Shown one piece after another: positions 204-64,000 of a stretch of DNA of 64,000 bases. The translations under genes were made by a program, and so were the position numbers. The stretch lies in contig NW_027361982.1 in NCBI RefSeq assembly GCF_039654945.1, positions 1,674,001 to 1,738,000 on the forward strand, in the 5' to 3' direction. The notes under the pieces are model-generated. The model did not search any database and was not told the DNA's origin. It was given only the letters and a program-made list of their open reading frames with translations. Within the stretch, counting starts at the first letter, position 1, and each line of letters begins with the position of its first letter. This DNA is from Dendrobates tinctorius (Eukaryota).

Positions 204-37685
<37,482 letters not shown>

Positions 37686-38980: not shown

Positions 38981-41900
38981 TCATTGTGGTATCAGGCGGA
39001 TGAGCTGAGCTTCACCTGGCGCCAGCTGCACGCTGTCCTGGAGCAGCTGACCTCTGTTGCGCTCCAGTTTGGTAGTCAACAATAATCGAACAGAGTTTGA
39101 GAAATAGGGAAATCGCAGAGACACATTGTGTGATCGATCAGAAGGCCCAATAAGGACTAAAAGCGTGGAACAGGCCCAGGAGGATAATGCACTGTAAGAG
39201 GAGCCATTAGATAAAAGCTGCAGCCAACCAGAGTAGAGCGCAGGGTTCTGGTATCGCAGGTGGAGAAGAGAACGGAGCCAGGAGGGCGGCGGGAGGGACT
39301 GTGGAGACAATGAGGAAAAAGGCATCAACTGGGACAGATTATCAGGAAGTTCTCACTATGCAAAAGCACTCAATTCGTGTAGATTATAATACTGCCCCCT
39401 ACGTACAAGAATATAATTACTATAATACTGCCCCCCTATATACAAGAATATAACTACTATAATACTGCCCCCCTATATACAAGAATATAACTACTATAAT
39501 ACTGATCCCTATGTACAAGAATATAACTACTATAATACTGCCCCTATATACAAGAATATAAACTACTGTAATACTGTGCCATTCACAAGAATATAACTAC
39601 TATAATACTGCCCCTACGTACAAGAATATAACTAATATAATACTGCCCCCTATATACAAGACTATAATTACTATAATACTGCTCCTATGTGCAAGAATAT
39701 AACTATTATAAGAGTGTGTGCACACGTTGCGGATTCTGCTGTGGATCCGCAGCGGATTTGGCCCTGCGGATCCGCAGCAGTTTCTGCTGCATTGTACAGT
39801 ACCTTTATTTTCTATGGAAAATGAAAACTGCTGTGCACATGCTGCGGATTTTTCAGCGCGAATTTGCTGCGGTTTCAAATCCGCAGCATGTCACTTCTTT
39901 GTGCCGAACCCGCTGCAGTTTTACACCTGCTCTATTGTACAGGTGTCTAACCGCAGGCTAATCCGCAGATAAATCCGCAGCAGAATCCGCAACGTTTGCA
40001 CGCACCCTAATACTGCCCCTATGTACAAGAATATAACTACTATAATACTGCTCCCTAACTACAAGAATATAACTACTATAATACTGCCCCCTATGTACAA
40101 GAATATAACTACTATAATACTGCCCCCTATGTACAAGAATATAACTACTATAATACTGCCCCTACATACAAGAATATAACTACTATAATACTGCCCCTGT
40201 GTACAAGAATATAACTTCTATAATACTGCCCCCTATGTGCAAGAATATAACTACTATAATGCTGCCCCTACGTACAAGAATATAACTACTATAATACTGC
40301 CCCTACGTACAAGAATATAACTACTATAATACTGCCCCTACGTACAAGAATATAACTACTATAATACTGCCCCCTATGTGCAAGAATATAACTACTATAA
40401 TACTGCCCCTATGTACAAGAATATAACTACTATAATACTGCCCCTATGTACAAGAATATAACTACTATAATACTGCCCCCTATGTACAAGAATATAACTA
40501 CTATAATACTGCCCCCTATGTACAAGAATATAACTACTATAATACTGCTCCTATGTGCAAGAATATAACTACTATAATACTGCTCCTACGTGCAAGAATA
40601 TAACTACTATAATACTGCCCCCTATGTACAAGAATATAACTACTATAATACTGCCCCCTATGTACAAGAATATAACTACTATAATACTGCTCCTATGTGC
40701 AAGAATATAACTACTATAATACTGCTCCTACGTGCAAGAATATAACTACTATAATACTGCTCCTATGTACAAGAATATAACTACTATAATACTGCCCCTA
40801 CGTACAAGAATATAACTACTATAATACTGCCCCCTATGTACAAGAATATAACTACTATAATACTGCCCCCTATGTACAAGAATATAACTACTATAATACT
40901 GCCCCCTATGTACAAGAATATAACTACTATAATACTGCCCCCTATGTACAAGAATATAACTACTATAATACTGCGCCCTATGTACAAGAATATAACTACT
41001 ATAATACTGCCCCCTATGTACAAGAATATAACTACTATAATACTGCTCCTATGTGCAAGAATATAACTACTATAATAGTGCCCCTACGTACAAGAATATA
41101 ACTACTATAATACTGCCCCCATGTACAGTGCTGTTCCCACTATATCTTTTTCAGCTGTGTGATAGTGTCTCAGTCTTTCTGATGTGCGATACATATCTCA
41201 GTATGTGTGACCCTTATCGGGTCTGTGGCTCGTTTGCTGACCCCGAGGTGACACACCTGGTTCAGGGACAGTATGACGGTTCCAGGTAGGGTTACAGCCA
41301 GGAATTGTCTCAACTCCAGAGAATCAGTGTCGTCAGGTGTCACCTGCAGAAAATGAGAGGTTACTTTATGAAGTGCCCTTCCCCTCCCCCATTCCCCACT
41401 CACCTCCCAGGCCAGATCCTTCATGTCTGACCCCAAAGTGAACGGTTGCAGGTTCCAGTTGAGTAGCGGACAGGTGCACAGAAGTTGGGACTTATTTTTG
41501 GGTGCATCCTCGTCATCACACAGCCAATTAGGAAGCAGGATTAGCCTAATTATAGAGTTTTGTTAGAAATTTTGCTTTTGCGTGGATACGTCACTGTGCG
41601 ATTACTCGGTTGTCACCTTTCCTCCTCGCCGGCAATTTCTACTTCATTCAGGAGGATCTGAGATATCTGCAAAAAATCAAGACGTATCGTAGTCACCGAC
41701 TATAGTACAAGTGTCCAAAACTGTTCCCCGAACAACTATCAAAGTGATGTGATGTTAGATCAGATGTAGTCACAGCCCCGCCCCCTGGTGATGATATCAC
41801 TGAGTTGTCAGCCCCGCCCCCTGCTTATGACATCACTGAGTTGTCAGCCCCCCCCACCCCCAAGTACTAGTGCTGACAGTACTTCATTTCCCCTCTCACC

Positions 41901-43939
41901 ATCATTACAGTTGTTTTCTTGTCACCTAAAAGCTGGAACCCAGATACTCCATCTTCCATCCAGCTCCGGGCAGAGTCCTGCACAAGATGGGTTCAAGTTA
42001 CTAAAGCCGAGGGGCCACAGCGCTGGAGTGTGTAGGAGGGCTGTGAAATTTGTAGCGGATGACAGATATTTTTTAATAACTGCTGTGATGGTAATAATAT
42101 CTACAGTGTCACCACTCTTACAGTAAAAAAGCCCGCCCATCTTGGCAGACAGAACCTTCTTTCCTGTGCTACACACAGCTTCTCTGAGACTCCTTTCATT
42201 CTTTCCAGAGGTTTCCCATCTCTAGCTTCAGTAAAGATGACTGATCATGACTAAGACACAAACAGGTGAGAGATCCTACTGAAGAAACGAACAGGGTTCT
42301 TTACAGCAAGAGCAGAAAGGCCAAGATGGTTCATTGAGGAACAGTGGTGTGAATGTGTAAAATGGAAGTGCGCCCCCTCGTGGAGGAATAAAGGGTCATA
42401 CAGCCACACCAGAGTTTATCAATGAACCATTCTGTCCTCCCCTGTAAGGTTCATCTCCTTTCTCCACAGCTTGTCTGCTCTTACAGTAAAGAAGACTGTT
42501 CATTTCTGGAAACAGAATTCCTCCAACAGGAGGGGGCGCTCTTGTCTTCTGAGCAGTCAGATTTGCACCATATTGTATGGGCCATTTCTATACTGGCTCA
42601 GATTTATCTTCTCGCCTCAGAACACTAAATCCATGGAATTCCACGATAGTCTCTGGACGCTCATCAGTGCCAATATTACATCCCGTGTGTACGTTTTATT
42701 ACAGGGGTGTCTGGGTTTCCTATCTCAATGCAGCAGAGAACCGCTGCAGATATCCGCACCTGAGCCCCTAATAAGTGGCCGCCTTTAGATGCAGCTGCCT
42801 GATGCTGAGCTCTCCATGACCTGCAGACCGCAAGGCTTTTGGCCAACTTCCCACAATGAGTTTTTGATGCTGCAGATTTTCTGCACCAATTACAGAAATT
42901 AGATTCATTGCGTTTTTTAAAGTTACATTTTTCTCAGCTGCTTTGGTTTTTCCTCCCTGTGATCAGGTGCTAAATATACTGCTTTGTGTTGGACACGTCC
43001 CCGCTGCTTAGCGGTGATCAAACTTCATTGATAAAGTCAAGTGCAGATTACTTTTGCTTTTTTTTTTTTTAAAAAAACATAAATAACTAAATCTCCAAGT
43101 TTATGGAGAAAATCCAGAAAGGGAAATTAATATACAGAAGAGAATCTGCTCCAAAAGGCACAAGAAAAAAAAAGTGTGTGAACAGAGTCTTCCATTCTCT
43201 CCCCACAATCTCATGTATGAGCATCTCCCATAGACTGTATGACATCACAAAGTTGGGGAACATCACCTTCAGCCTCTGGACTTGATGGCCATCATACTCC
43301 TCCAGTATCCGGACCTCCAGGATGATGTGGAGACCTGGGAACGTGAAGACCACAGAGGTGATTACGACTCCGGGCCTGGTCACTCAGCGCAGCCCTACAG
43401 ACCGCCACAGCCACTTACCGTATTTCTGCCCCTCGGTCACCTGACCTCTCACACTCCCATTAGTCACCTCTTCATGGGGGAGTATGAGACCACCACACCC
43501 CAAGGATGACGCCTCTCGTATTCTGTGCATCACATCTGTAAGACATGGGGGGGGGGGGCAAGAGATGGGTAGAGGGGACAGGTCAGACTGCCCCCACATA
43601 ACACACGCTGCCCCCACACAGTGGGGTTTGTAGTTTCATGTCACCCAGAGAGAATCACAAGCCTGACATCACTGCCCCCCCTCCGTCACACATTGCAGGT
43701 GGGGTGGGGGGTCCCGCATATAACTTACCGGTCTGTGGCGCCAGTCCTGCGATGCGGCAGATCACTCGGCGTTGGTGCCACACGCTTGGTGGAGGCGGCA
43801 CGTACGCCTGGGCAAGAATGGCGATGGCAGAACTAAGCAGCGCAGCAAGTAATACCCAGAAAAGCACCAGCAGCCCCCGACGTACGCACACCCAGCCACG
43901 GGCGTCCTGCTCGGGCCTCAGGAGCGGCTGGGACTCCAT
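38981..43939 (-). CDS. Divergent SLC3 (4F2hc/rBAT)-like type II membrane glycoprotein with degenerate alpha-amylase-like ectodomain, 8 coding exons, 356 aa
   Basis: Exons: 43729-43939, 43419-43535, 43267-43334, 41900-41977, 41617-41666, 41404-41545, 41257-41343, 38981-39298. All GT-AG, phases 1,1,0,0,2,0,0, 1071 nt, no internal stop. Motifs collinear with SLC3A2 (recalled): WVCVRRGLLVLFW-TM-AIAILAQ (cf WVRTRWALLLLFW..AVVIIVR), WHQRRVICRI (cf WWHTGALYRI), GLHIILEV (cf IRVILDL), DSARSWMEDGVSGFQ (cf DALEFWLQAGVDGFQ), FLAVTLPGTVI (cf LFTLPGTPVF), LRYQNPALYSG, LLLTT...LAPGEAQLIRL (cf LLLST...LEPHEGLLLRF). ATTAAA on the minus strand at 38941-38946. Confidence 0.85.
39385..41120. repeat. 35-36-bp minisatellite (TATAACTACTATAATACTGCCCCCTATGTACAAGAA)n in the last intron of the SLC3-like gene
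   Basis: Clear tandem periodicity, interrupted by the MITE at 39712-40007. Confidence 0.96.
39712..40007. mobile_element. Harbinger-type MITE inserted in satellite
   Basis: TAA|GAGTGTGTGCACACGTTGCGGATTCTGCTG...CAGCAGAATCCGCAACGTTTGCACGCACCC|TAA; the duplicated TAA comes from the satellite unit. Confidence 0.85.
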
Positions 43940-44405
43940 GTCTCCCTGGCTGCGTCTCCTCCTGCAGATCTTATACTTCAGTATTTGCTGACCAGAAAAT
44001 CGCCACCAGGTGTGAAGAGGAGTGTCACATTCTACATCCACCATCATCGCCCCACCCGAGGAGACAACGAGGGTCCAAGCAACCGACCAACCTCTGTACA
44101 ATCACAGTACCACCAAAAATGGAACACACACACAAAAAATCAAAATTATGCACCCAATCTACAAAACCAGGTACCTGAAAAGTCAGTGGTCAGACCTGCT
44201 TAACTAGCTAATCATGGCGGCCACCGCATTGGGGGGATGGCTGGATGAGCAGTTTTCCAGTCCCCAGACACTGCTGGCAGCTGCCACCTTCCTACACACT
44301 GAGGCCATGATCCCGGCAGCCAGCGATAATGTGAGCCCAGGTGAGGCTGCGGTGATGATAACCTGGACCGGACGAGGGAGGCCTCGATCATGGCTCCACA
44401 TAAAG

Positions 44406-45233: not shown

Positions 45234-45679
45234 ACATAAAGGCTCCGGTGGTTTCCATGGAGATGTGTGATAATCATTTGAGCACACGATCCGTTTTATA
45301 GTCACCACGGTCTGACGGATCCTGATCACGTCAGAGGGTCGCAAATCAAAATCACCCTCATCATCCTCGTCCCGCTGGATCTGGTCTTCATGATGTGTTA
45401 CTAATTTTCTTGTGATTTCATGTTTTTTTTATTTTTCTTTAGTAAAATATTTAGAAAGCTGCTTTACGATCTCTGTGACAAAACCGCCACGTGAATACAA
45501 CCGCACATGGAGATCGCGTCAATATGGCCGCCTTTATGGATTGTGTGTGTGTGCGAGGTGTGGCCAGTTTTTGTCACAACCTTGGTTCACATCCACAAGG
45601 TGCATTCACACCAGTAGCACGGCAGCCATGACGGTGGGGAAACAGCAGAAATATGGCTGCTACATCGGATGCCGTATAA

Positions 45680-46137
45680 GGCTAGTTTCACACTAGCGTT
45701 TATGAGCGCAGCGACGGCCTGCGCACGGCCGCCGCTAAGCCCCGCCCCGGCTGCGCCTCCGCCTCCGCCGGTAGCTCCGCCTACCGGCGCATGACGCTGC
45801 ATGCGCCCTGCGTCCCCTATCTTTATCACTGGGGGTGCAGGCCGTGCGCAGTATGCGTTTGGCGGCGCATGCGCCTTTTTGACGGTGCGCCGACCTGCGC
45901 CAAACGCAACCTGCTGCAGTTTGGTTGCGCCGGCGCACCGTCAAAAAGGCGCATGCGCCGCCAAACGCATATTGCGCACGGCCTGCGCCCCCAGTGATAA
46001 AGATAGGGGACGCAGGGAGCATGCAGCGTCATGCGCCGGTAGGCGGAGCTACCGGCAGAGGCGCGGCAGGGGCGGGGCTTAGCGGCGGCCGTGCGCAGGC
46101 CGTCGAAGCGCTCATAAACGCTAGTGTGAAACTAGCC
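45680..46137. mobile_element. Near-perfectly palindromic CpG-rich MITE (Harbinger-type)
   Basis: GGCTAGTTTCACACTAGCGTTTATGAGCGC...GCGCTCATAAACGCTAGTGTGAAACTAGCC; the whole element folds back; flanks TAA / TTA. Confidence 0.85.
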
Positions 46138-46249
46138 TTACAGAGGCACAATAGGAGGATAGTGCCGTATACAGCACAGAGCGGCATATGGCTCCACGCA
46201 CAGGCCCCCAACACTGCAGAGTAGAGACCCTTAATGGTGTGGGGTCGAT

Positions 46250-49151: not shown

Positions 49152-52100
49152 ATGGGACACGTCCTGTCGTTCACACACTGCAGTAAGTGTCGCTGCTGTA
49201 CAATTGTGTCTGGCTGTGAGTGCAGGTGCGGCATCTCCTCCATCATTGTCTTATGTAGGTGCTGCATATGGGTGTATCCTATACAGAGTGAGCGTGGGGT
49301 CCTCGTGTGACGGTCACCCAGATTATCACGTCATGTGCGACTGTCACACTACAACAGTAGTATCTGATGCTCTGACCGTATAAGCGGTGCGTGTATATAT
49401 CTGTGTGTTGGCGGTGCCGTGTTTGTATATATCTGTGTGTTGGCGGTGCCGTGTGTGTATATATCTGTGTGTTGGCGGTGCCGTGTGTGTATATATCTGT
49501 GTGTTGGCGGTGCCGTGTGTGTATACATCTGTGTGTTGGCGGTGCCGTGTGTATACATCTGTGTGTTGGCGGTGCCGTGTGTGTATATATCTGTGTGTTG
49601 GCGGTGCCGTGTGTGTATATATCTGTGTGTTGGCGGTGCCGTGTGTGTATATATCTGTGTGTTGGCGGTGCCGTGTGTATACATCTGTGTGTTGGCGGTG
49701 CCGTGTGTGTGTATATATCTGTGTGTTGGCAGTGCCGTGTGTGTATACATCTTTGTGTTGGCAGTGCCTGGGTGGGGGCGGTGCCGTGTGTGTATATACC
49801 TGTGTGTTGGCGGTGCCGTGTGTGTATACATCTGTGTGTTGGCGGTGCCGTGTGTGTATACATCTGTGTGTTGGCGGTGCCGTGTGTGTATATACACCTG
49901 TGTGTTGGCGGTGCCGTGTGTGTATATACACCTGTGTGTTGGCGGTGCCGTGTGTGTATATACACCTGTGTGTTGGCGGTGCCGTGTGTGTATATACACC
50001 TGTGTGTTGGCGGTGCCGTGTGTGTATATACACCTGTGTGTTGGCAGTGTCTGGGTGGGGGCGGTGCCGTGTGTGTATATATTTGTATTAGCGGTGCCGT
50101 GTGTGTATACATCTGTCTGTTGGCAGTGCCTGGGTGGGGGTGGTGCCTGTGTGTTGGCGGTGCCGTGTGTGTGTGTGTGTATACATCTGTGTGTTGGCGG
50201 TGCCGTGTGTATATACACCTGTGTGTTGGCGGTGCCGTGTGTGTGTATATTTGTGTGTTGGCGGTGCCGTGTGTGTATATACACCTGTGTGTTGGCAGTG
50301 CCTGGGTGGGGGCGGTGCCGTGTGTGTATATACACCTGTGTGTTGGCAGTGCCTGGGTGGGGGCGGTGCCGTGTGTGTATACACCTGTGTGTTGGCGGTG
50401 CCGTATGTGTATATATTTGTATTAGCGGTGCCGTGTGTGTATATACACCTGTGTGTTGGCAGTGCCTGGGTGGGGGCGGTGCCGTGTGTGTATACACCTG
50501 TGTTGGCGGTGCCGTGTGTGTATATATTTGTATTAGCGGTGCTGTGTGTGTATATATCTGTGTGTTGGTGCCGTGTGTATATATACACCTGTGTGTTGGC
50601 AGTGCCTGGGTGGGGGCGGTGCCGTGTGTGTATACACCTGTGTGTTGGCAGTGCCTGGGTGGGGGTGGTGCCTGTGTGTTGGCGGTGCCGTGTCTGTATA
50701 CATGTGTATTAGTGGTGCCATATGTGTATACACCTGTGTGTTGGCGGTGCCGTGAGTGTATACATCTGTGTGTTGGCGGTGCCGTGTGTGTATATATTTG
50801 TATTAGCGGTGCCGTGTGTGTATATACACCTGTGTGTTGGCGGTGCCGTGTGTGTATACATCTGTGTGTTGGCGGTGCCGTGTGTGTATATATTTGTATT
50901 AGCGGTGCCGTGTGTGTATATACACCTGTGTGTTGGCGGTGCCGTGTGTGTATACATCTGTGTGTTGGCGGTGCTGTGTGTGTATATATTTGTATTAGCG
51001 GTGCCGTGTGTGTATATACACCTGTGTGTTGGCAGTGCCTGGGTGGGGGCGGTGCCGTGTGTGTATACACCTGTGTGTTGGCGTTGCCGTGTGTGTATAT
51101 TTGTATTAGCGGTGCTGTGTGTGTATATATCTGTGTGTTGTCGGTGCTGTGTGTATATATACACCTGTGTGTTGGCAGTGCCTGGGTGGGGGCGGTGCCG
51201 TGTGTGTATACACCTGTGTGTTGGCAGTGCCTGGGTGGGGGTGGTGCCTGTGTGTTGGCAGTGCCGTGTCTGTATACATGTGTATTAGTGGTGCCATATG
51301 TGTATACACCTGTGTGTTGGCGGTGCCGTGAGTGTATACATCTGTGTGTTGGCGGTGCCGTGTGTGTATATATTTGTATTAGCGGTGCCGTGTGTGTATA
51401 TACACCTGTGTGTTGGCGGTGCCGTGTGTGTATACATCTGTGTGTTGGCGGTGCCGTGTGTGTATATATTTGTATTAGCGGTGCCGTGTGTGTATATACA
51501 CCTGTGTGTTGGCGGTGCCGTGTGTGTATACATCTGTGTGTTGGCGGTGCTGTGTGTGTATATATTTGTATTAGCGGTGCCATGTGTGTATATACACCTG
51601 TGTGTTGGCAGTGCCTGGGTGGGGGCGGTGCCGTGTGTGTATACACCTGTGTGTTGGCGTTGCCGTGTGTGTATATTTGTATTAGCGGTGCTGTGTGTGT
51701 ATATATCTGTGTGTTGGCGGTGCTGTGTGTATATATACACCTGTGTGTTGGCAGTGCCTGGGTGGGGGCGGTGCCGTGTGTGTATACACCTGTGTGTTGG
51801 CAGTGCCTGGGTGGGGGTGGTGCCTGTGTGTTGGCAGTGCCGTGTCTGTATACATGTGTATTAGTGGTGCCATATGTGTATACACCTGTGTGTTGGCGGT
51901 GCCGTGAGTGTATACATCTGTGTGTTGGCGGTGCCGTGTGTGTATATATTTGTATTAGCGGTGCCGTGTGTGTATATACACCTGTGTGTTGGCGGTGCCG
52001 TGTGTGTGTATACATCTGTGTGTTGGCGGTGCCGTGTGTGTATATATTTGTATTAGCGGTGCCGTGTGTGTATATACACCTGTGTGTTGGCAGTGCCTGG

Positions 52101-55100
52101 GTGGGGGCGGTGCCGTGTGTGTATATACCTGTGTGTTGGCGGTGCCGTGTGTGTATACATCTGTGTGTTGGCGGTGCCGTGTGTGTATACATCTGTGTGT
52201 TGGCGGTGCCGTGTGTGTATACATCTGTGTGTTGGCGGTGCCATGTGTGTATACATCTGTGTGTTGGCGGTGCCGTGTGTGTATATACACCTGTGTGTTG
52301 GCGGTGCCGTGTGTGTATATACACCTGTGTGTTGGCGGTGCCGTGTGTGTATATCCACCTGTGTGTTGGCGGTGCCGTGTGTGTATATCCACCTGTGTGT
52401 TGGCGGTGCCGTGTGTGTATATCCACCTGTGTGTTGGCGGTGCCGTGTGTGTATATCCACCTGTGTGTTGGCGGTGCCGTGTGTGTATATCCACCTGTGT
52501 GTTGGCGGTGCCGTGTGTGTATATCCACCTGTGTGTTGGCGGTGCCGTGTGTGTATATCCACCTGTGTGTTGGCGGTGCCGTGTGTGTATATCCACCTGT
52601 GTGTTGGCGGTGCCGTGTGTGTATATCCACCTGTGTGTTGGCGGTGCCGTGTGTGTATATCCACCTGTGTGTTGGCGGTGCCGTGTGTGTATATCCACCT
52701 GTGTGTTGGCGGTGCCGTGTGTGTATATCCACCTGTGTGTTGGCAGTGTCTGGGTGGGGGCGGTGCCGTGTGTGTATATATTTGTATTAGTGGTGCCGTG
52801 TGTGTATACATCTGTCTGTTGGCAGTGCCTGGGTGGGGGTGGTGCCTGTGTGTTGGCGGTGCCGTGTGTGTGTATACATCTGTGTGTTGGCGGTGCCGTG
52901 TGTATATACACCTGTGTGTTGGCGGTGCCGTGTGTGTATATATTTGTGTGTTGGCTGTGCCGTGTGTGTATATATTTGTGTGTTGGCGGTGCCGTGTGTG
53001 TATATATTTGTATTAGCGGTGCTGTGTGTGTATATATCTGTGTGTTGGCGGTGCCGTGTGTATATATACACCTGTGTGTTGGCAGTGCCTGGGTGGGGGC
53101 GGTGCCGTGAGTGTATACATCTGTGTGTTGGCGGTGCCGTGTGTGTATATATTTGTATTAGCGGTGCCGTGTGTGTATATACACCTGTGTGTTGGCGGTG
53201 CCGTGTGTGTATACATCTGTGTGTTGGCGGTGCCGTGTGTGTATATATTTGTATTAGCGGTGCCGTGTGTGTATATACACCTGTGTGTTGGCGGTGCCGT
53301 GTGTGTATATATTTGTATTAGCGGTGCCGTGTGTGTATATACACCTGTGTGTTGGCAGTGCCTGGGTGGGGGCGGTGCCGTGTGTGTATATATTTGTATT
53401 AGCGGTGCTGTGTGTGTATATATCTGTGTGTTGGCGGTGCCGTGTGTATATATACACCTGTGTGTTGGCAGTGCCTGGGTGGGGGTGGTGCCTGTGTGTT
53501 GGCAGTGCCGTGTCTGTATACATGTGTATTAGTGGTGCCATATGTGTATACACCTGTGTGTTGGCGGTGCCGTGAGTGTATACATCTGTGTGTTGGCGGT
53601 GCCGTGTGTGTATATCTTTGTATTAGCGGTGCCGTGTGTGTATATACACCTGTGTGTTGGCGGTGCCGTGTGTGTATACATCTATGTGTTGGCGGTGCCG
53701 TGTGTGTATATATTTGTATTAGAGGTGCCGTGTGTGTATATACACCTGTGTGTTGGCAGTGCCTGGGTGGGGGCGGTGCCGTGTGTGTGTACACCTGTGT
53801 GTTGGCGTTGCCGTGTGTGTATACATTTGTATTAGCGGTGCTGTGTGTGTATATATCTGTGTGTTGGCGGTGCCGTGTGTATATATACACCTGTGTGTTG
53901 GCAGTGCCTGGGTGGCGGCGGTGCCGTGTGTGTATACACCTGTGTGTTGGCAGTGCCTGGGTGGGGGTGGTGCCGTGTGTGTATACACCTGTGTGTTGGC
54001 GGTGCCTGGGTGGGGGTGGTGCCTGTGTGTTGGCAGTGCCGTGTCTGTATACATGTGTATTAGTGGTGCCATATGTGTATACACCTGTGTGTTGGCGGTG
54101 CCGTGAGTGTATACATCTGTGTGTTGGCGGTGCCGTGTGTGTATATATTTGTATTAGCGGTGCCGTGTGTGTATATACACCTGTGTGTTGGCGGTGCCGT
54201 GTGTGTATACATCTGTGTGTTGGCGGTGCCGTGTGTGTATATATTTGTATTAGCGGTGCCGTGTGTGTATATACACCTGTGTGTTGGCGGTGCCGTGTGT
54301 GAATACATCTGTGTGTTGGCGGTGCCGTGTGTGTATATATTTGTATTAGCGGTGCCGTGTGTGTATATACACCTGTGTGTTGGCAGTGCCTGGGTGGGGG
54401 CGGTGCCGTGTGTGTATATATTTGTATTAGCGGTGCCGTGTGTGTATATACACCTGTGTGTTGGCGGTGCCGTGTGTGAATACATCTGTGTGTTGGCGGT
54501 GCCGTGTGTGTATATATTTGTATTAGCGGTGCCGTGTGTGTATATACACCTGTGTGTTGGCAGTGCCTGGGTGGGGGCGGTGCCGTGTGTGTATATATTT
54601 GTTTTAGCAGTGCCGTGTGTGTATACACCTGTGTGTTGGCGGGGCCGTGTGTGTATATATGTGTATTAGTGGTGCCGTGTGTGTGTATACACCTGTGTGT
54701 TGGCAGTGCCTGGGTGGGGGTGGTGCCTGGGTGTTGGCGGTGCCGTTTGTGTATATATGTGTATTAGCGGTGCCGTGTGTGTGTGTATACACCAGTGTGT
54801 TGGTGGTGCCGTACGTGTATATCTTCGTGTTATCAGTGCTGCCAGTATGTTTGTAAAATTAGTCTCTATGGTAATTAAACATATGTTAGTGGGGGCGGGG
54901 CCGTGATGGACTCGTGCATTTATGCAAAACTTACCCAAAACTTATCAAAATTGTGCCTGTAATGTCTGTTTCTCCTGCAGAGGACGCTCCATCCACTGCC
55001 TCCAGCACCCCGGACTCCTGCCCTCCAGATGGTAAAGTCCCCGTGTGTATGTGTGTCCTCTATACTTGTCACATGACATGCACTATTGCTTTGTAGCTCC

Positions 55101-58100
55101 ACCCCTTCCGAATGGCTCCTCCTCCCTGTAAACACAATACTGGACTTCATTTATCAAACCCAACAGCTCAGCTTACATTTTTAAAAAATTTTCTGTTAAA
55201 AATTAAAAGGTGCACAGTGATTGGTTCCTATGGGCTCCAATGACAGCTGTACTGATAAATGAGGCCTGCCACATGTTCAGTGCTGCTCTGATTCTGCCTT
55301 CTTGTCTATGTTGTAGGTGACCTTGATGATGCCGCGGTGACCCTGGCTGATCTGTGGCCCTTACCTTCACCTCAGGAGCCAACTTTCTCTTACATTACCA
55401 TTGGAAGTTCAGCCCCATTAACTCGTCCCACAGTTAGGGCCCGAAGGGGACGGAGTCTGGGCCGAGGACAGTTACCAAGGAAAGAGGAACCGGAAGAGGA
55501 AACTGTGACCTATGTTCTGTTGGAGAAGGCGTGTCAGATCTCACAAGCCCTGCCCCCGAGCAACTATGAGGAACAGACACTAGTGGAGAAGCCCCAGCCA
55601 AGAATATCAGGGATCACAATGGGTGAGACATACGAGCTGCACGTCATGTGATACAGTGATATTACTACATGTCACCAAGGAGACACGGTACAGTGAATCC
55701 TCCAGCAGAAAAGTGAGTGCAGCTCTGGAGTGTAATGCAGGATGTAACTCAGGATCAGTAACATAATGTATGCACACAGTGACTGCACCAGCAGAATAGC
55801 GAGTGCATCTCTGGAGTATAATACAGGATGTAACTCAGGATCAGTAATGTAATGTATGCACACAGTGACTGCACCAGCAGAATAGTGAGTGCAGCTCTGG
55901 AGTATAACACAGGATGTAACTCAGGATCAGTAATGTAATGTATGTACACAGTGACTGCACCAGCAGAATAGTGAGTGCAGCTCTGGGGTATAATACAGGA
56001 TGTAACTCAGGATCAGTACAGGATCAGTAATGTATGTACACAGTGACTGCACCAGCAGAATAGTGAGTGCAGCTCTGGAGAATAATACAGGATGTAATTC
56101 AGGATCAGTAATTTAATGTATGTACACAGTGACTACACCAGCAGAATAGTGAGTACAGCTCTGGAGTATAATACAGGATGTAACTCAGGATCAGTACAGG
56201 ATCAGTAATGTATGTACACAGTGACTGCACCAGCAGAATAGTGAGTGCAGCCCTGGAGTATAATACAGGATGTAATTGAGGATCAATAGTGTAATGTATG
56301 TACACAGTGACTGCACCAGCAGAATAGTGAGTGCAGCTCTGGGGTATAATACAGGATGTAACTCAGGATCAGTAATGTAATGTATGTACACAGTGACTGC
56401 ACCAGCAGAATAGTGAGTGCAGCTCTGGGGTATAATACAGGATGTAACTCAGGATCAGTACAGGATCAGTAATGTATGTACACAGTGACTGCACCAGCAG
56501 AATAGTGAGTGCAGCTCTGGAGAATAATACAGGATGTAATTCAGGATCAGTAATTTAATGTATGTACACAGTGACTACACCAGCAGAATAGTGAGTACAG
56601 CTCTGGAGTATAATACAGGATGTAACTCAGGATCAGTACAGGATCAGTAATGTATGTACACAGTGACTGCACCAGCAGAATAGTGAGTGCAGCCCTGGAG
56701 TATAATACAGGATGTAATTGAGGATCAATAGTGTAATGTATGTACACAGTGACTGCACCAGCAGAATAGTGAGTGCAGCTCTGGAGTATAATACAGGATG
56801 TGACTCAGGATCAGTCATGTAATGTATGTACACAGTGACTCCACCAGCAGAATAGCTCTGCTCAGCTGCTGCTCATTGTGGTGATTGTGGGTGCGGTCGA
56901 CACTGATCCTGCTTTGTGTTCCTGAGCTCCAGAGAATCAACACCTCTCCACCCAGGGACCTACCCAGGGAGGAGTGGGTTTCCTGGGATGAGTGAAGGAA
57001 CCAAGTCCCAGGCTTCTGTTTCCCAGCAACCGGCCTGCACATCAGAGGACTCGGGGGTGAGGCGCTCAACCAGGAGTCGCAGCAATGTGGCTCCTACTCC
57101 CCCCAGGTTTGCAGAGACCCAGAGAAGCCGTAAGGCTTCCAACATGGAGGAGAAGCCTGCTAGCAGCGTGCAAGATGGCGGTCCTTCCGGAGGAAAGCTG
57201 AGTGCTCACGGAGGTAAGGCCGACCTCGCTGAGGAAAGTTGTGGGCTGCAGAAATCAAAGGAGTCTGTGTCCACCTATGCCTCCCGGGTCATGAGCCACC
57301 TCCGTGAATATGAAGAGGCGAGCAAGACCATCAGGAGGCTCCGGGAGGAGATGCGCTGCACAAGCGCCAAAGCTGCAGGTTCCTCCAGACCCGTGAAGAC
57401 CCAACTCCAGGCGGAGGTAAATCAACTGAAGCTGGATATTAATGAGCTGGAGGTGAGGAAAGTGTTCCTAAGAGAAAAAAGTGGACCATTTAAAGAAAAA
57501 CTAATAAATGAGGACAGATTTAGAGAAATGGCTGATAACAGAGAGCAAAGGCAGATGGGGCTGCAGCCTGAGAGCCAGGTGGATGATGATGATGATGACG
57601 ACCAGCAGAAAGCAGCACCTGGCAGCCTGCAAAGTCACCCGCAGGCCTCGTGCAGCGAGCTCCATGCTGGACAGGTGACATTGGCATCTGGTCGCAGTTC
57701 TGCTGGCTCTGGGGAGGACAGTGACAACAGCGGCCAGGGAGGGGCTCTAATGACGGAGATAAAGCTCCTGGAGTCCTCAGTGTGCCTTCAGAACTTCCAT
57801 CTTGGTGATGATTTACCAGAGGCGGCACCTGGGGACCAGAAGAAAAAGGCAAAGAAGAACAAGCCAAAGCTCCAGGAAGTGGTGAGCTATGTATATGCCC
57901 CCTTCCCTGTACCCCCCGAGTCAGCTGCAGGGTCAGCTCGCTGCATAAGCCCCGTTGCCCAGCCCAGCCCTGGTTCTGCTGTGGATCCGGTGCAAAGGCG
58001 CGGGAGAGTACAGAGCACAGTAGTGAGGCACAGAGCTCCGCCTCAGCAGGTGCATCAGCCGAGAGGCTGGACAGTGAGGGCGGCCCGGCGGCGGGTATAC

Positions 58101-61100
58101 GGTTAGGCCACGAAACTGTGGTGTGCTCCTCAGTGGGAGGGGGGAGCGGCCCAGTGTCGGGGGCAGCTCCGGTAGCCTTGGTGCCCCTAAATGCTGTTGC
58201 CGCTAATCACTTAGGTGAGAAGCGGCCGCAGTTTGAGGGGGCTGTTGGGGCTGGGTGTTCCGATCCTCCCAAGATCCCGTTCTGCGTTGGCGCTGCTGGT
58301 CAGCAAGATCCTGATGTAAATGATCAGCGGCGCCTCACAGCGGCAAAAGTTCGGCGCCTAATGAAGCAAAGAAACTTGCCAACTGGTGATGTGGAGGGCA
58401 CCCGTAAGTCCAGGGGTGATGTCGCCTCCAGTTGGAGGTGGATAATGGTGATACTGTTGGTGTTGATGTGGTCACTGGTCCGGTTGCCCCCCCCGGTGGT
58501 GGCAGTACCCGTTATTAGTTATGCCGCTGTCACCTCCGGGGAAAATAGGGCGTACTCCTTGTCTCCGAGCTCTGGGGATGGCATGTTGCAGCGGCGTCTC
58601 CTGGAGGCTCTAAAGAAGGGGGAGAGATCAGTAAAGGTAGAGAGTCGAGAGGTTGATCTATCCTTCTGGATAGAGAGGCATGTCCTCAGGGCCTTCCGAG
58701 AGCAAAATGGGGGAAATACAGTGTGGTCCCTTCCGACAGCCGGGCCAGGTAGTGTGCGTAGGAATGTGGTCCGTCTTCGGTGGAGGGGCACACCTCTGTG
58801 TCGTTAAAGAGGGGGAAGGATTCCTCCTCTGAGGCAGAGGATAATGGGAGTGGAAAGAAGAAAGCCATCTTACTCAATCACCAATGATGGCGGTACCCTC
58901 TCCGTTGACGCTGGCGTCCATTAATGTCGCCAGCATAAAGTCAAATGCAGCTAGATTTGCGGCCTTTGATTTTCTCAGCCGTGTTGAAGCTGACATTTTC
59001 TTTTTGCAAGAGACCAGACTGCCAAACATGGCAGACGTGTTTAAAGCCAAGAAGAAGTGGAGACTTGGGCCCTCCTATTGATCTCTTGCGGCCGAGCCGT
59101 ATAGCGGAGTGGCGGTCCTTTTTACCGCACTGGTGGAATGCCGACGGGCTATTGAATTAGAAATGGTGAGGTGCCTGATCTTGGATGTCCTCATGAAGGG
59201 ACAAGAGCTCCGGCTTATTAACATCTATGGTCCCCAATCTAAATGGGACCGGAAGTGTCTCTTTATGAGGATCAAGCCCTACCTTTTTACAAGTCGGCAG
59301 GTTGTCTTTGGAGGGGACTTCACTACTGTCACAAGGCCCTGAGATAGAGGAGGTTCCAGAGACAAGCTGACTTATGATAGCGTCGCCCTTAATTGTATAG
59401 CTAGTAAGGCTCGCTTGGTGGATGTCCACATTCGGCACACCCCAGGCCACGAGGGGTTCACCTATCATAGAGGTAACTGTAAGTCCAGAATAGATAGGTT
59501 TTATTTAAAGGAAGAAGCTGTCTCTTCAGCAGTGTCTGTTGTTGAGGTGGAGTTCTCCGACCACTGCTAATTTTGTTTTCTCTGAATGTTAGAGACCCTC
59601 CGGATGGGAAGAGGCTTTTGGAGGCTCAATTTGTCTCTCTTGGAAGAAGCGGACATAAGACAGTCCTTTGAGGATTTTCTTCAGAGCCAGGTACCCTTAC
59701 TGGATCTTTGTAGTAGTAAGTTAGAGTGGTGGGAGATGGTCAAGAAAAGGGGGGGCGAGATTCTTCCGCCAGCTCTCGAGCCTCAGGAGTCTGAACAGGT
59801 ACCGCCTGTATCAGGGTCTGAGGAGGAAACTCGAGCATCTTGTCTCAACTGGAGGTAGCCGCGAGGAGATCTCCAGAGTGAAATCTTTGCTCATGAGGTG
59901 TCAGTACGATACACACGCATCTTTGGTTTTTGAGAGGGATTACGGGAAGTACCGCTCGCCCGACCCTTACAGAAACTGCAAGATGTCAGTGAATAGTAAA
60001 GTTGTTATAGGACTGGTTGACACTGCGGGGTCCCTGAGGCGATCCAGATCAGGGATCCTGGACGTTGTCAGATCCTTCTAGTCGCACCTCTTGGGGAAGA
60101 GGGATCTTGATTGGGATAAGATGTCGGCTTTCCTGGCTGAAGTCGTTCCTGAACCAGGGGTAGACCCCTCTCTTGACGTATTGACAGAGATGATCAGGGA
60201 AGAGAAAGTTAAGTTGGCGATTGAAGGGCTTGCCCCAGAAAAATCACCCGGTCCAGATGGCTTAACATCTGAGTTTTATAAGACCTTTAAGGACGCTTTG
60301 GTTCCACTCTTGACTGAGGTATTCAATGAGTGTCTTTCCTCGGGCACTCTGCCAAAGTCAATGAGGAGGACTGCCCTGATCATCTTGTCAAAGGGTAAAG
60401 ACCCATCTTGCATTGAGAATTGGTGTCCCATAGCGCTTCTCAATGCAGACAGGAAGGTTCTGGCAAAGGTGCTGTTTAATCGGCTGGTGAAATTTGCACC
60501 CTGACTCCTTTCAGAGGCCCAGCATTGCTCTGTTCCAGTTCGCAGCACATTTAGTGCAGTGCTCGGTGTCCGGGTGGTGGTGGAGCAGGGTAGGGCAGGT
60601 CACTGGAAGGGGTACATGCTGTCACTGGACCAGGCAAAAGCGTTTGATCGGGATAATCACAAGTACCTCTGGTTTGTCCTTCTGAGATATGGCCTGCCGG
60701 GGGGGGGGGGGGGGGTGTTGTGAGGTGGGTTTATCTTGTGGGACTATGGGACACTGGGGTGTTTGGGGAAACACTGGCACTGCGTGATCTGGCCTATGGA
60801 CGTTGGACATGGACTGAGGCATGAGACGCAGGACCAGCTCTCTGGTCAGTGCGGGGGTTGGGAATGGTGGGCTTCAGTGTGGGGTGTTTAGTCTTGTATA
60901 TATTTGTATAGTTTGGTTATTTTATATACTGTATATGCTGTATTTATATAAAAAAAAAAAAAGTTTATATATTTATGTCAGCCTTTGTTTATTTTAATTT
61001 TCTTATTAGTTTGTTTGGTGACCGTAAGGTGTAAGTTATTATTAGTTGTTATTCTGTATATATGTATAATATGTGTGAGAGGAGAGAATGAGCGGCTGGA

Positions 61101-63814
61101 CTAGTGTTCAGTATACGTATTATTTTTCTGGCTGATATTCTTATGTTTCTGTTATTATTATTATTGTTTTTTTCATTTTTATAATAAAAGATCTACAGGA
61201 TGTAGCTCAGGATCAGTACAGGATAAGTAATGCATGTACACAGCGACAGCAGAATAGTGAGTGCAGCTCTGGAGTAAGATGCTGATTTTATATAGGACAT
61301 CACCGCTTCCTCGTTATCAGTTATTATACGCAGTGCTGGCATGTCTGGTATATGGGGACAGATACAATGGCTTTCCCCTGGCTCGTCCTCCATTGTTGCA
61401 GCTTATCGCTCTCTGCGGTCTCTGATCTCTATAATCCGCACAGCTTTGTATTAAAGCTTCTGTGAATGAGAGGAATCTCTGGATGCAGCGCTCACCTCTC
61501 CCAGCTGGGCCTGGAGGTGGGATAATGGAGAGGATTTATGGGGTCCTCCTTTGTCATTAGCTTCTTCACCACTGCAGGAGCTGGGGGGCACTTCTTTGCT
61601 GCCTTTACTTTGATAAAACCTTCTATAATATGTAAGTGCCGACACCCTCAGGGCACGAGGCGCCCACCACAGGCGATGTCTTGCTGACATATGAGGGGTG
61701 CCCTGCATGGAGTGGGCAGCAGCTAACCCTGGGTGTGGACATCTGTTCTCCGTGGCTTTTTCTGGCCACAGACGGGGGTTCTCAGGACAGAGGTTGTTAC
61801 TAGTCTCAGGGGGGTTGTCCCTGTCCGTCTATATTTAGTGTCTTCTTCTTCCCTCACAGACGCTGGTCGTAGAGACTCTCGCCACCTGTCACCCCAGAAC
61901 CGGAGCAGCTACCAGGAGGACACCATGAAGAAAGCCGGTGAGTGGAGGCCGAGAATGAGGAAAATGGCTACAAAAGGGACACTTATGTCAGTCTTAATGT
62001 GAGGCCACCCTACAGGATCAGGCCCCTCCACAGCCATGGCTGTCAGTTAAAGTATCTGGGTCCCTCCTGTAAAACGGTCAGGGTCCCACAGCTCCATCCA
62101 CCACCTAATAACTCAATATGTGGAAAACACAGGGAGGATCTTTTGAGGTTCACTTAATTTTGGAATCCGTAGAAGGTGGTAATATGGACTCCTTTATAGC
62201 TGACGGAGCTCCCTAGTGGCCGAGGACCAGGGCTTGTTGAGTATATGGGCCACATGAGTTCATCTTATTACTTGCCAACTTGGTGGAAGTGAAGTCAGGT
62301 CTGACCGCCCTGCAGCTCTGTAAGCCAGGAGTGTGGGGCCCCGTCACTGATAGTCCTGGAGTGAAACTACAGAATATTACACATCCCTGGGATTATGTCT
62401 GGTATAATATCACTGTGATGTCATCACCCAGCGTCACGATAGAGGGCGAACAGCTCCACGCATAGCACAGTCTTCCTACTGAGGATCAGTGTTGCATAAT
62501 GACCATATGCCCGTGCTGTCGCTCTCTGCGCGCCCGTGCTGTCGCTTACCTCGCGCTCTCTGCGCGCCCGTGCTGTCGCTTACCTCGCGCTCTCTGCGCG
62601 CCCGTGCTGTCGCTTACCTCGCGCTCTCTGCGCGCCCGTGCTGTCGCTTACCTCGCGCTCTCTGCGCGCCCGTGCTGTCGCTTACCTCGCGCTCTCTGCG
62701 CGCCCGTGCTGTCGCTTACCTCGCGCTCTCTGCGCGCCCGTGCTGTCGCTTACCTCGCGCTCTCTGCGCGCCCGTGCTGTCGCTTACCTCGCGCTCTCTG
62801 CGCGCCCGTGCTGTCGCTTACCTCGCGCTCTCTGCGCGCCCGTGCTGTCGCTTACCTCGCGCTCTCTGCGCGCCCGTGCTGTCGCTTACCTCGCGCTCTC
62901 TGCGCGCCCCTGCTGACGCTTACCTCGCGCTCTCTGCGCGCCCCTGCTGACGCTTACCTCGCGCTCTCTGCGCGCCCCTGCTGACGCTTACCTCGCGCTC
63001 TCTGCGCGCCCCTGCTGACGCTTACCTCGCGCTCTCTGCGCGCCCCTGCTGACGCTTACCTCGCGCTCTCTGCGCGCCCCTGCTGACGCTTACCTCGCGC
63101 TCTCTGCGCGCCCCTGCTGACGCTTACCTCGCGCTCTCTGTGCCTGTGCTCATATCTACCTTGCTCTCTGTGACTGTGCTGACTCTTTCTTGCCTCTCTC
63201 TCTTTCAGTGGCAGACCTCTTATACTGGCGAGACATCACTCTCTCTGCCGGCTGTCTCACCGGTCTCACCGTGTGCCTGCTGTGCCTCATCCACTTCAGT
63301 GTGATCAGCATCATCTCCTACTCCTGTCTCCTCGTCCTCAGCGCAACATTGATAATACGACTCTACTGCAGACTCCTGAAGAAGGGAGACGGAATGAATC
63401 CCTTCCAGTGAGTGCGGATATATAACCAGCGGACAGCTGTGGGGGTTGCTTAGCATGATCTGTGCAGTGTTAATGTATGTAGCAGTGTTGGGGTCCTCAG
63501 CTTAGAGGGGTATCGTGTGCTATACATGTATCAGCGTGTGCAGGAGAGTTCAGAAATCTCATTCACTTCGCTGATTCTGTAAAACGCTGCGTGTTGTCCT
63601 CAACGATAAAACACAGAAAAACTGCAGCGTGGGAACAGGCCCTTATAGTCTGATATCCGCTGTTCCTTTCCTCAGGAAGTACCTGGACATGGATCCCATT
63701 CTGCCGCCCCAGCAGGTTGAGGTGGTCGCTGCTCGTCTTGTCGTTCTCACCTTTACTGCGCTCTCCACCCTCCGCAGACTCTTCTTAGTGCAGGACACAA
63801 AGGAGTCACTGAAG
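49152..63814 (+). CDS. RTN2: Reticulon-2, 5' portion (first six coding exons; gene continues past the window end)
   Basis: Exons 49152-49182 ([10 protein letters not shown]), 54981-55031 ([13 protein letters not shown]), 55317-55622 (PTFSYITIG...), 61860-61937 (...MKKA), 63209-63407 (VADLLYWRD...NPFQ, reticulon homology domain), 63676-63814 (KYLDMD...[15 protein letters not shown]). GT-AG with consistent phases. N-terminus resembles RTN2 [24 protein letters not shown]; divergent orientation to VASP as in mammals. Extra exons could be hidden in introns. Confidence 0.9.
49385..54830. repeat. GT-rich 30-34-bp minisatellite (CTGTGTGTTGGCGGTGCCGTGTGTGTATATACAC)n with higher-order structure, RTN2 intron 1
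   Basis: Tandem units with variant cassettes; near-identical ORFs recur at a 576-bp offset (50709, 51285). Confidence 0.96.
55690..56852. repeat. 86-bp satellite (CACAGTGACTGCACCAGCAGAATAGTGAGTGCAGCTCTGGAGTATAATACAGGATGTAACTCAGGATCAGTAATGTAATGTATGTA)n
   Basis: Period about 86, with a 442-bp higher-order duplication (56105/56547); resumes at 61194-61280 after the LINE. Confidence 0.93.
56853..61193 (+). mobile_element. Tx1/L1-clade non-LTR retrotransposon, internally deleted and degenerate
   Basis: ORF1-like coiled-coil region from about 56988. ORF2 from 58884: APE motifs SINV, FLQET, GGDF, SRIDRF, SDH; RT motifs [35 protein letters not shown]. Stops throughout; jumps at about 60715 to an AT-rich 3' UTR ending AATAAAAGATC. 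Confidence 0.88.
61829..61838 (+). promoter_or_regulatory. MEF2 consensus site at a candidate internal RTN2 short-isoform promoter
   Basis: CTATATTTAG matches CTA(A/T)4TAG; it lies about 20 nt before the exon carrying in-frame ACCATG (61925) for MKKA-VADLLYW. Confidence 0.45.
62510..63140. repeat. 34-bp CpG-rich minisatellite (CTGTCGCTTACCTCGCGCTCTCTGCGCGCCCGTG)n
   Basis: About 18 nearly identical units in two variant blocks, ending about 70 bp before the RHD exon acceptor. Confidence 0.96.
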
Positions 63815-64000
63815 GTAAAGTCACCTGTGGCTCTTGCTTTTCTCATGTACTTCCCCAGGCATCTAATATTGATGACTTCTCATCACCTGGATCTGAGCCG
63901 TGTAGTTCAGCTCCATTCACTGTTTACATCCGGTCACAGCTGATCTGTGGAGGTGCCGGGTATCCAACCCTAACACCAAATATTGGTGACCTGTCATATT

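Follow-up and report, generated by a model that had tools for sequence, protein, structure and literature searches.

The 64,000-nucleotide stretch of Dendrobates tinctorius DNA analyzed here (contig NW_027361982.1; hereafter the window, whose positions count from its first letter) carries on its minus strand, from 43939 to 38981, an SLC3A2-like gene made of eight exons (Table 1). Two vertebrate heavy chains, SLC3A1 (rBAT) and SLC3A2 (4F2hc), escort SLC7 amino-acid transporters, and an earlier reading of the letters alone (the sequence-only reading) had taken the gene for an additional member of this family. When the exons were spliced by script, all introns proved to be GT-AG with consistent phases, and the coding sequence (CDS) of 211 + 117 + 68 + 78 + 50 + 142 + 87 + 318 = 1071 nt comprised 356 codons without a stop, closed by a TGA at 38983-38981. 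Exons, phases, borders and the stop-free frame of 356 amino acids (aa) were thus reproduced exactly as the sequence-only reading had given them. Its remark that the list of open reading frames (ORFs) carries just fragments of the gene was borne out as well, and the poly(A) signal that it had placed about 35 nt past the stop was found as an ATTAAA about 35 to 40 nt after the TGA. The window has no runs of N, and no second copy of the gene was found in its 64 kb; tblastn of the 356-aa model matched only the eight exons. Intron 7 contains, at 39385-41127, a 36-bp tandem array of about 9 + 32 copies with 86 to 94% matches; the array is interrupted by an approximately 300-bp insert (39712-40007) that is rich in GCGGAT/CTGCGG and resembles a small inverted-repeat transposon.

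Table 1. Features of the SLC3A2-like gene and of its neighbors in the window.
Feature	Position	Strand	Content or support
5' untranslated region (UTR) or promoter-proximal region	43940..44150	-	transcribed at least to 44150 in some RNA contigs
Exon 1	43729..43939	-	CDS nt 1-211; start codon, cytosolic tail of about 20 residues, transmembrane (TM) helix, A-Y-V-P-P-P-P, start of beta1
Codons 1-7, M-E-S-Q-P-L-L	43919..43939	-	fits acidic dileucine pattern [DE]xxxL[LI]
TM helix, about residues 19-43	43811..43885	-	hydropathy maximum and profile alignment to 4F2hc TM segment
Juxtamembrane A-Y-V-P-P-P-P, residues 45-51	43787..43807	-	hidden Markov model (HMM) alignment
Exon 2, 117 nt, phase 1	43419..43535	-	alpha1, beta2 (L-G-C-G-G-L-I), N96 sequon, alpha2; RNA joints on both sides
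Exon 3, 68 nt	43267..43334	-	beta3, start of alpha3; RNA joints
Exon 4, 78 nt	41900..41977	-	alpha3, beta4 (D-G-x-S-G-F); RNA joints
Exon 5, 50 nt	41617..41666	-	alpha4; RNA joints
Exon 6, 142 nt	41404..41545	-	beta5 (L-I-L-L-P-x-W-L-C), N192 sequon, beta6, beta7; RNA joints
Exon 7, 87 nt	41257..41343	-	alpha7, beta8 (L-P-G-T); RNA joint
Exon 8, 318 nt including TGA	38981..39298	-	alpha8, C-terminal beta-sandwich (domain C), sequons N282 and N309
Poly(A) signal ATTAAA	38941..38946	-	follows a 25-nt T run (as RNA)
VASP WH1 exons	30585-30902 and 10493-10756	-	downstream of the SLC3A2-like gene
Reticulon-domain exon	63629-63943	+	weak, 18 bits; upstream of the SLC3A2-like gene

The start codon of exon 1 stands in a good Kozak context (GACATGG), and the exon is supported by its frame and GT donor, by a match to Pfam SLC3A2_N and by an RNA joint at 43535/43729 in runs X16 and X15. 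Upstream in-frame ATGs of this species would allow an N-terminal extension, which we rejected as the conserved start: the Dendropsophus gene has in-frame stops just upstream of its start codon, and the Met of M-E-S-x-P-L-L is invariant among orthologues. In Dendrobates tinctorius alone, the upstream in-frame ATG pair may provide an alternative start. On the minus strand upstream of the ATG, the stretch 43990-44050 is conserved with Eleutherodactylus, with an in-frame D-V-E-C-D-T-P, and is partly kept in Dendropsophus, where in-frame stops make it non-coding; it may represent a conserved 5' UTR or promoter element.

Contigs of public RNA runs were compared with positions 41150-44150, a span that stops short of exon 8, the poly(A) site and the 36-bp array of intron 7. 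Runs X15, X16 and X19 are from the same species and match without mismatches, and X1 is from a relative that differs at about 4% of sites. In these runs of two species, contigs were joined at 41343/41404, 41545/41617, 41666/41900, 41977/43267, 43334/43419 and 43535/43729, and each skipped stretch has plus-strand ends CT..AC, equivalent to GT..AG for a minus-strand gene. At the junction of exons 7 and 8, loose ends at 41257 (X1, X15 and X16) run on into the first 30 bases of exon 8, read as their reverse complement. Since the six joints and these loose ends agree with the model, all seven predicted junctions are used in RNA, and the seven introns that had been proposed from the letters are removed in the RNA contigs of both species. 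Word depth in X15 reached thousands to tens of thousands in exons versus 66 in intron 3, which argues, as far as so poor a measure allows, for an RNA library and for substantial expression. A 930-nt contig of the relative extends 387 nt beyond exon 7, that is, by exon 8 (318 nt) and about 69 nt more, and therefore ends about 25 to 30 nt past the ATTAAA. At the other end of the gene, record 3 of X1 and record 19 of X19 reach 44150, and the depth of X15 drops from thousands to about 150.

The window and relative X1 differ at 7.6% of sites in 43940-44150 and at 1.9% in the CDS of exon 1; in a partial list of the coding differences, 10 of 15 were synonymous. One X1 contig carries W28C at 43856 (codon 28), in the F-W of the TM signature described below, a position at which W is present in every family protein that covers it. 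RefSeq isoforms of relatives (P0009, P0010, P0002 and P0017) omit exon 4 (78 nt), exon 7 (87 nt) or exons 5 and 6 (192 nt), with exon 4 skipped in orthologue P0009 and exon 7 in orthologues P0010 and P0017. Every one of these skips preserves the reading frame and would delete parts of the barrel; no exon-skip joint was present in the four RNA runs X1, X15, X16 and X19 within the span compared.

Judged from its sequence, the product of the gene is a type II single-pass membrane glycoprotein of 356 aa. Its sole hydrophobic stretch has its best 19-residue window at residues 23 to 41 (mean Kyte-Doolittle value, 2.7), and all windows that begin beyond residue 30 stay at or below 1.6; hydropathy thus agrees with the single TM helix of the sequence-only reading. 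The TM segment is preceded by the signature W-V-x-x-R-R-x-L-L-x-x-F-W, which is shared with 4F2hc. The five sequons of that reading were also recovered, at N96, N192, N250 (across the exon 7/8 junction), N282 and N309, and four of the five are kept in most species (NKS in 11 of 13 sequences, NQS in 8 of 13, NGS at position 282 in 10 of 15 and NVS in 10 of 15). The ectodomain is therefore predicted to be N-glycosylated. The cytosolic tail has only about 20 residues and begins with M-E-S-Q-P-L-L; a motif ME[ST]x[PS][LI]L is found at the N terminus of all 10 orthologues that cover it, from Ascaphus to dendrobatids, and belongs to a known motif class, as which it is a putative adaptor-binding sorting signal. 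In the profile HMM alignment, P48, the first proline of a conserved A-Y-x-P-P-P run, is aligned with the 4F2hc cysteine that bonds SLC7 light chains. The cysteine nearest to the TM helix is C61, inside strand beta1 of the ectodomain model, and five ectodomain cysteines are conserved (residues 61, 84, 184, 200 and 294).

The family of this protein was identified by several comparisons. Exon 1 matches Pfam SLC3A2_N with 28.5 bits, above the gathering cutoff of 27; the same family matches 6 of 11 orthologues, mostly just below the cutoff. Exon 8 gives a weak match, below the cutoff, to DUF3459, the C-terminal domain of GH13 proteins; exon 8 alone had no match among the PDB sequences, in which 4F2hc was reached only by the family profile. 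Indeed, a profile of 11 frog orthologues found human 4F2hc in the PDB with an E value of 1e-13, versus about 0.6 for rBAT, in two colinear matches that cover residues 15 to 179 (TM helix to approximately barrel strand 5) and residues 251 to 353 (domain C). In a protein-language-model search, SLC3A2 clusters were nearest, with a score of 0.95. The Pfam family Alpha-amylase did not match any family member examined at E values up to 1.

The predicted fold leads to the same neighbors. A first full-length AlphaFold model, with a predicted local distance difference test (pLDDT) value of 60, had a weak domain C but already matched 4F2hc chains best in the PDB; it was replaced by an ectodomain-only model with a pLDDT of 71.5 and a predicted template modeling score (pTM) of 0.73, in which eight beta/alpha units are followed by a beta-sandwich. 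With this model, the top 12 Foldseek matches in the PDB were all human or mouse 4F2hc (E about 1e-13; TM score, 0.67 to 0.75), and among Swiss-Prot models the top four were SLC3A2 of rabbit, rat, mouse and human, with mouse SLC3A1 in 19th place. VIA-align superposed 311 of 313 residues on residues 109 to 528 of 4F2hc (Z, 24.1; root mean square deviation, 3.1 Å; 21 to 22% identity); the corresponding values were a Z of 21.3 with 14% identity for rBAT and a Z of up to 22.9 with 12 to 16% identity for GH13 enzymes. Both programs thus support the amylase-like fold that had been proposed, with 4F2hc as the closest relative, and the identity is as low as the sequence-only reading had stated. Because the 311 of 313 residues superpose across the whole 4F2hc ectodomain of about 420 residues, the predicted ectodomain would be a complete 4F2hc core with about 110 fewer residues, minimized as that reading had suspected. 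Its further suggestion that one whole SLC3A2 exon is lost is not favored, and a 4F2hc minus one barrel unit was rejected, because the predicted model retains all eight barrel strands, in eight beta/alpha units, and domain C. In the profile alignment, the missing residues follow strands 2 and 3 or fall within the part that matches residues 380 to 512 of 4F2hc. With SLC3A2 as the best neighbor in sequence, profile, fold and language model, the frog gene is, by sequence and predicted structure, a member of the SLC3 heavy-chain family of the 4F2hc/SLC3A2 type.

Orthologues were found in Ranitomeya (two species), Anomaloglossus, Eleutherodactylus, Dendropsophus, Hyla, Leptodactylus, Engystomops, Pseudophryne, Mixophyes, Hyperolius, Lithobates, Staurois, Rhinophrynus and Ascaphus. 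They are intact in at least 12 frog genera, and at least 7 genera have open frames of about 354 to 361 aa. An exhaustive phmmer search with exon 8 against 1.84 billion representatives gave seven true matches, all from frogs, besides one spurious repeat protein, and three word-indexed protein searches gave frog orthologues, one stray GH13 protein and nothing else. Thus, no member from outside the frogs was found in the exhaustive search or in the three word-indexed ones, the last of which used an Ascaphus query and E values up to 10. The range that had been proposed, amphibians, is therefore shown for frogs, from Ascaphus and Rhinophrynus to Neobatrachia, and not for amphibians at large. Identity to the window protein is 91% in Ranitomeya, 65 to 69% in other hyloids, 54 to 56% in myobatrachids and 43 to 45% in Ascaphus, in line with the fast evolution claimed for the gene. 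Exon sizes are nearly the same in the genes of Eleutherodactylus and Dendropsophus (220 or 211, 117, 68, 78, 50, 142, 87 or 81, and 318 nt).

Selection was analyzed by the Nei-Gojobori method with bootstrapping in three hyloid species. The ratio of nonsynonymous to synonymous substitution rates (dN/dS) was 0.324 (95% bootstrap interval, 0.241 to 0.432) for the window versus Eleutherodactylus, 0.361 (0.275 to 0.474) for the window versus Dendropsophus and 0.337 (0.248 to 0.451) for Eleutherodactylus versus Dendropsophus, and the highest value in any bootstrap replicate was 0.63. Domain C was the most constrained part (0.17 to 0.26). The SLC3A2-like frog gene is therefore under purifying selection, evolving faster than a typical housekeeping protein, and the sequence-only reading was right to take it for a functional gene: it is protein coding and has been kept for more than 200 million years in frogs. 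A pseudogene was rejected in view of the intact orthologues and of dN/dS values well below 1.

These data also bear on whether the gene is a transcribed relic or, instead, the divergent slc3a2 of Dendrobates tinctorius itself. Either could be suspected from the generic name "uncharacterized protein" and from the several RefSeq isoforms that omit exons. However, a relic is hard to reconcile with frames that stay open in at least 7 genera over more than 200 million years, with a dN/dS that does not exceed 0.63 in any replicate and with omitted exons that are all in frame; and a species' own slc3a2 would hardly have only 21% identity to mammalian 4F2hc, lack its cysteine and have no family member found for Xenopus, which has a normal slc3a2. 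We consider both highly improbable. With about 21% identity, a separate locus and generic RefSeq names, the frog gene may instead be an extra SLC3 copy.

By analogy with 4F2hc, the frog protein may be the ancillary escort subunit of a multi-pass transporter, a function for which we see an even chance. The conserved TM helix and the compact ectodomain would then dock onto the transporter, most plausibly an SLC7-type light chain, and the link between heavy chain and partner would be non-covalent, since the light-chain cysteine is replaced by the conserved proline run. Sorting by adaptors, to an endosomal/lysosomal or a basolateral destination, would be directed by the N-terminal acidic dileucine, which would stand in for the long regulated tail that 4F2hc has. 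Docking onto a multi-pass partner would be the simplest reading because the TM helix is the region most similar to 4F2hc, and in published LAT1-4F2hc structures, the TM helix of 4F2hc reportedly packs against TM4 of the light chain. We also count in favor of an escort that the sequons are mostly retained across species and, for the sorting step, that the N-terminal motif is retained over the same range of frogs. Several observations weigh against an escort. The long regulatory cytosolic tail of the 4F2hc type is gone, none of the 10 orthologues aligned has a cysteine in the segment from the TM helix to beta1, and a classical, covalently linked heterodimer is made less likely by the missing disulfide cysteine. 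The ectodomain model, built from 15 frog sequences, is of middling confidence, and the barrel is the least constrained part of the protein and evolves fairly fast (dN/dS, 0.39 to 0.53). Finally, the searches returned no predicted protein of this family from Xenopus, Bufo or Rana temporaria, and thus the gene may be dispensable, patchily retained or just unannotated there. If the protein is not an escort, the 4F2hc scaffold could have been re-used without transporter service, as a frog-specific glycan-bearing membrane receptor, adhesion molecule or chaperone, with the loss of the cysteine marking the change. We regard this as rather unlikely. It would agree with the exchange of the cysteine for a conserved proline run in all members, with a tail cut to about 20 residues and given a new sorting motif, with five conserved ectodomain cysteines, apparently more than in 4F2hc, with the fast divergence and with a word depth in the thousands in some RNA runs, a poor measure by which expression would be unusual for a housekeeping escort. 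Yet it is precisely in the light-chain-contacting TM helix that the similarity to 4F2hc is strongest, we recognized no trait of a ligand-binding site in the protein, and in published mutagenesis the disulfide of 4F2hc was reportedly unnecessary for light-chain association or transport. The escort function remains the one that we prefer.

The origin of the gene can be approached from its neighbors. The sequence-only reading had placed it between VASP and RTN2, and WH1 exons downstream and a weakly matching reticulon-domain exon upstream are indeed present in the window (Table 1); annotation of the loci in Ranitomeya variabilis and Dendropsophus gives the same order, with a reticulon head-to-head upstream and VASP downstream. 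Human SLC3A2 and RTN3 are no more than about 1 Mb apart on 11q12-13. In humans, the gene order is FOSB, RTN2, PPM1N, VASP (PMC4015772), and the PPM1N paralogue PPM1B directly adjoins SLC3A1 at 2p21 (PMC8607452). The place that PPM1N has in humans, between RTN2 and VASP, is taken in frogs by the SLC3A2-like gene. These positions of PPM1N and of PPM1B beside SLC3A1, together with that of SLC3A2 near RTN3, suggest that an RTN/PPM1/SLC3 linkage group was copied by genome duplication. The gene could then be an ohnologue in the RTN2 paralogon that arose by whole-genome duplication from SLC3A2, or from the ancestor of SLC3A1 and SLC3A2, that mammals and most other vertebrates have lost and that survives only in frogs; we put the chance of this at close to even. 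An identity to 4F2hc of just 21 to 22% fits such a great age, and the seven introns of the gene rule out a retrocopy. However, many independent losses are needed if no member exists outside Anura, as the search of 1.84 billion representatives and the three word-indexed ones indicate. A DNA-level duplicate of slc3a2 that arose on the anuran stem, was placed beside RTN2 and was then trimmed and diverged in a burst would account for a range that is exactly Anura, with the deepest branches Ascaphus and Rhinophrynus included, for a sequence and fold nearer to SLC3A2 than to SLC3A1 and for the high ongoing rate. In that case, the RTN/PPM1 neighborhood would be a coincidence, and the gene would have had to diverge down to about 21% identity along the anuran stem and to change much more slowly afterwards (dN/dS about 0.33); we put the chance of this origin slightly lower. 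All in all, the ohnologue and the anuran-stem duplicate are about equally likely. Taken to its full extent, the ohnologue origin would make the gene the survivor of a fourth paralogon, an "SLC3A3" that arose beside RTN2/PPM1N in the vertebrate genome duplications and survived in frogs only, encoding a minimal, disulfide-free heavy chain that is routed by its dileucine and takes an as yet unpaired transporter to the endolysosomal or basolateral membrane. As a whole, this scenario is unlikely in our view. If it were true, the protein would be the smallest natural 4F2hc scaffold that supports a heteromeric transporter and a third arm of the SLC3/SLC7 system.

The remainder of the window is rich in repeats and mobile elements. 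In the VASP intron between the two WH1 exons, protease-, reverse transcriptase- and integrase-like ORFs at 16543-20130 (+) are flanked by near-identical 111-aa minus-strand ORFs at 15032-15367 and 20017-20352, and the whole of 15032-20352 looks like a long terminal repeat (LTR) retrotransposon. ORFs resembling the C terminus of a Tc1/mariner-type transposase (DDE-like region) also lie in the VASP intron, at 26137-26484 (-) and 29877-30239 (+). Very large tandem arrays, open in several frames and containing ORFs of more than 1000 aa of short repeated peptides, occupy 2613-6685 in the VASP gene region and 49279-54938 between the SLC3A2-like gene and the reticulon exons. At 45587-46224 there is a GC-rich block (GC, 0.64; observed/expected CpG, 1.09), which is an inverted duplication, since the ORFs 45735-46022 (-) and 45801-46082 (+) give almost the same peptide, and which is possibly the CpG island of the RTN2 promoter or first exon. 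At 56916-60504 (+), a 396-aa acidic ORF, for which Pfam has no family, is followed by ORFs resembling the endonuclease and reverse transcriptase of a long interspersed nuclear element (LINE); this is probably a non-LTR retrotransposon inside RTN2.

The literature was searched for a third member of the SLC3 family and for amphibian genes resembling SLC3A2, with no relevant result, and no paper describing these gene models was found. All source names of the orthologues read "uncharacterized" or "hypothetical" protein, except for a UniRef label that notes the SLC3A2_N domain. Since RefSeq already has gene models under such generic names, the advance is one of recognition and characterization, not of gene discovery. 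The new points are a pan-anuran family of the 4F2hc type, its compact ectodomain, the loss of the cysteine, the dileucine tail and the location in the PPM1N slot. To the taught pair of rBAT and 4F2hc, they would add a further 4F2hc-type gene, kept in one vertebrate order for more than 200 million years. The gene offers a natural test of which 4F2hc parts are indispensable; its product is a candidate to pair with orphan transporters, and the gene can serve as a marker when the RTN/PPM1/SLC3 paralogon is reconstructed. Should it turn out to have nothing to do with transport, it will be an example of the re-use of an escort scaffold.

Among known systems, the GH13 alpha-amylase and alpha-glucosidase enzymes, including membrane-anchored maltase-like receptors of insects such as Cqm1, have a barrel and a C-terminal beta-sandwich as in the frog protein (Z up to 22.9). 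They differ from it in sequence (12 to 16% identity), and an N-terminal TM anchor of the SLC3A2 type belongs to the frog protein. Active GH13 enzymes have a catalytic triad, Asp-Glu-Asp, on strands 4, 5 and 7 of the barrel, with the nucleophile Asp within a G-F-R-x-D motif; the beta4 motif of the frog family is G-F-x-L-[LS]. rBAT, the heavy chain of b0,+AT and AGT1, is a protein of about 685 aa with domain B, a C-terminal extension and the light-chain cysteine. It shares with the frog protein the superfamily, the general fold (Z, 21.3) and the nature of a type II glycoprotein, and it is more distant in sequence (profile E about 0.6; 10 to 14% identity). The closest system is 4F2hc (CD98hc, SLC3A2), the heavy chain of LAT1, LAT2, y+LAT1/2, asc-1 and xCT. 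Both proteins have type II topology, the SLC3A2_N signature W-V-x-x-R-[RW]-x-L-L-x-x-F-W in the TM helix, sequons and, as far as the predicted model shows, a barrel with domain C and without domain B that superposes over its full length. The frog protein is smaller (356 aa versus about 530 to 630 aa), with an ectodomain shorter by about 110 residues and a cytosolic tail of about 20 residues with an acidic dileucine, whereas 4F2hc has a tail of about 80 to 180 residues, which serves integrin and ubiquitin regulation. The light-chain cysteine of 4F2hc is a proline within the conserved A-Y-x-P-P-P of the frog protein. The frog protein differs from 4F2hc further in its five conserved ectodomain cysteines, in the location of its gene next to RTN2 and VASP and in being found only in frogs.

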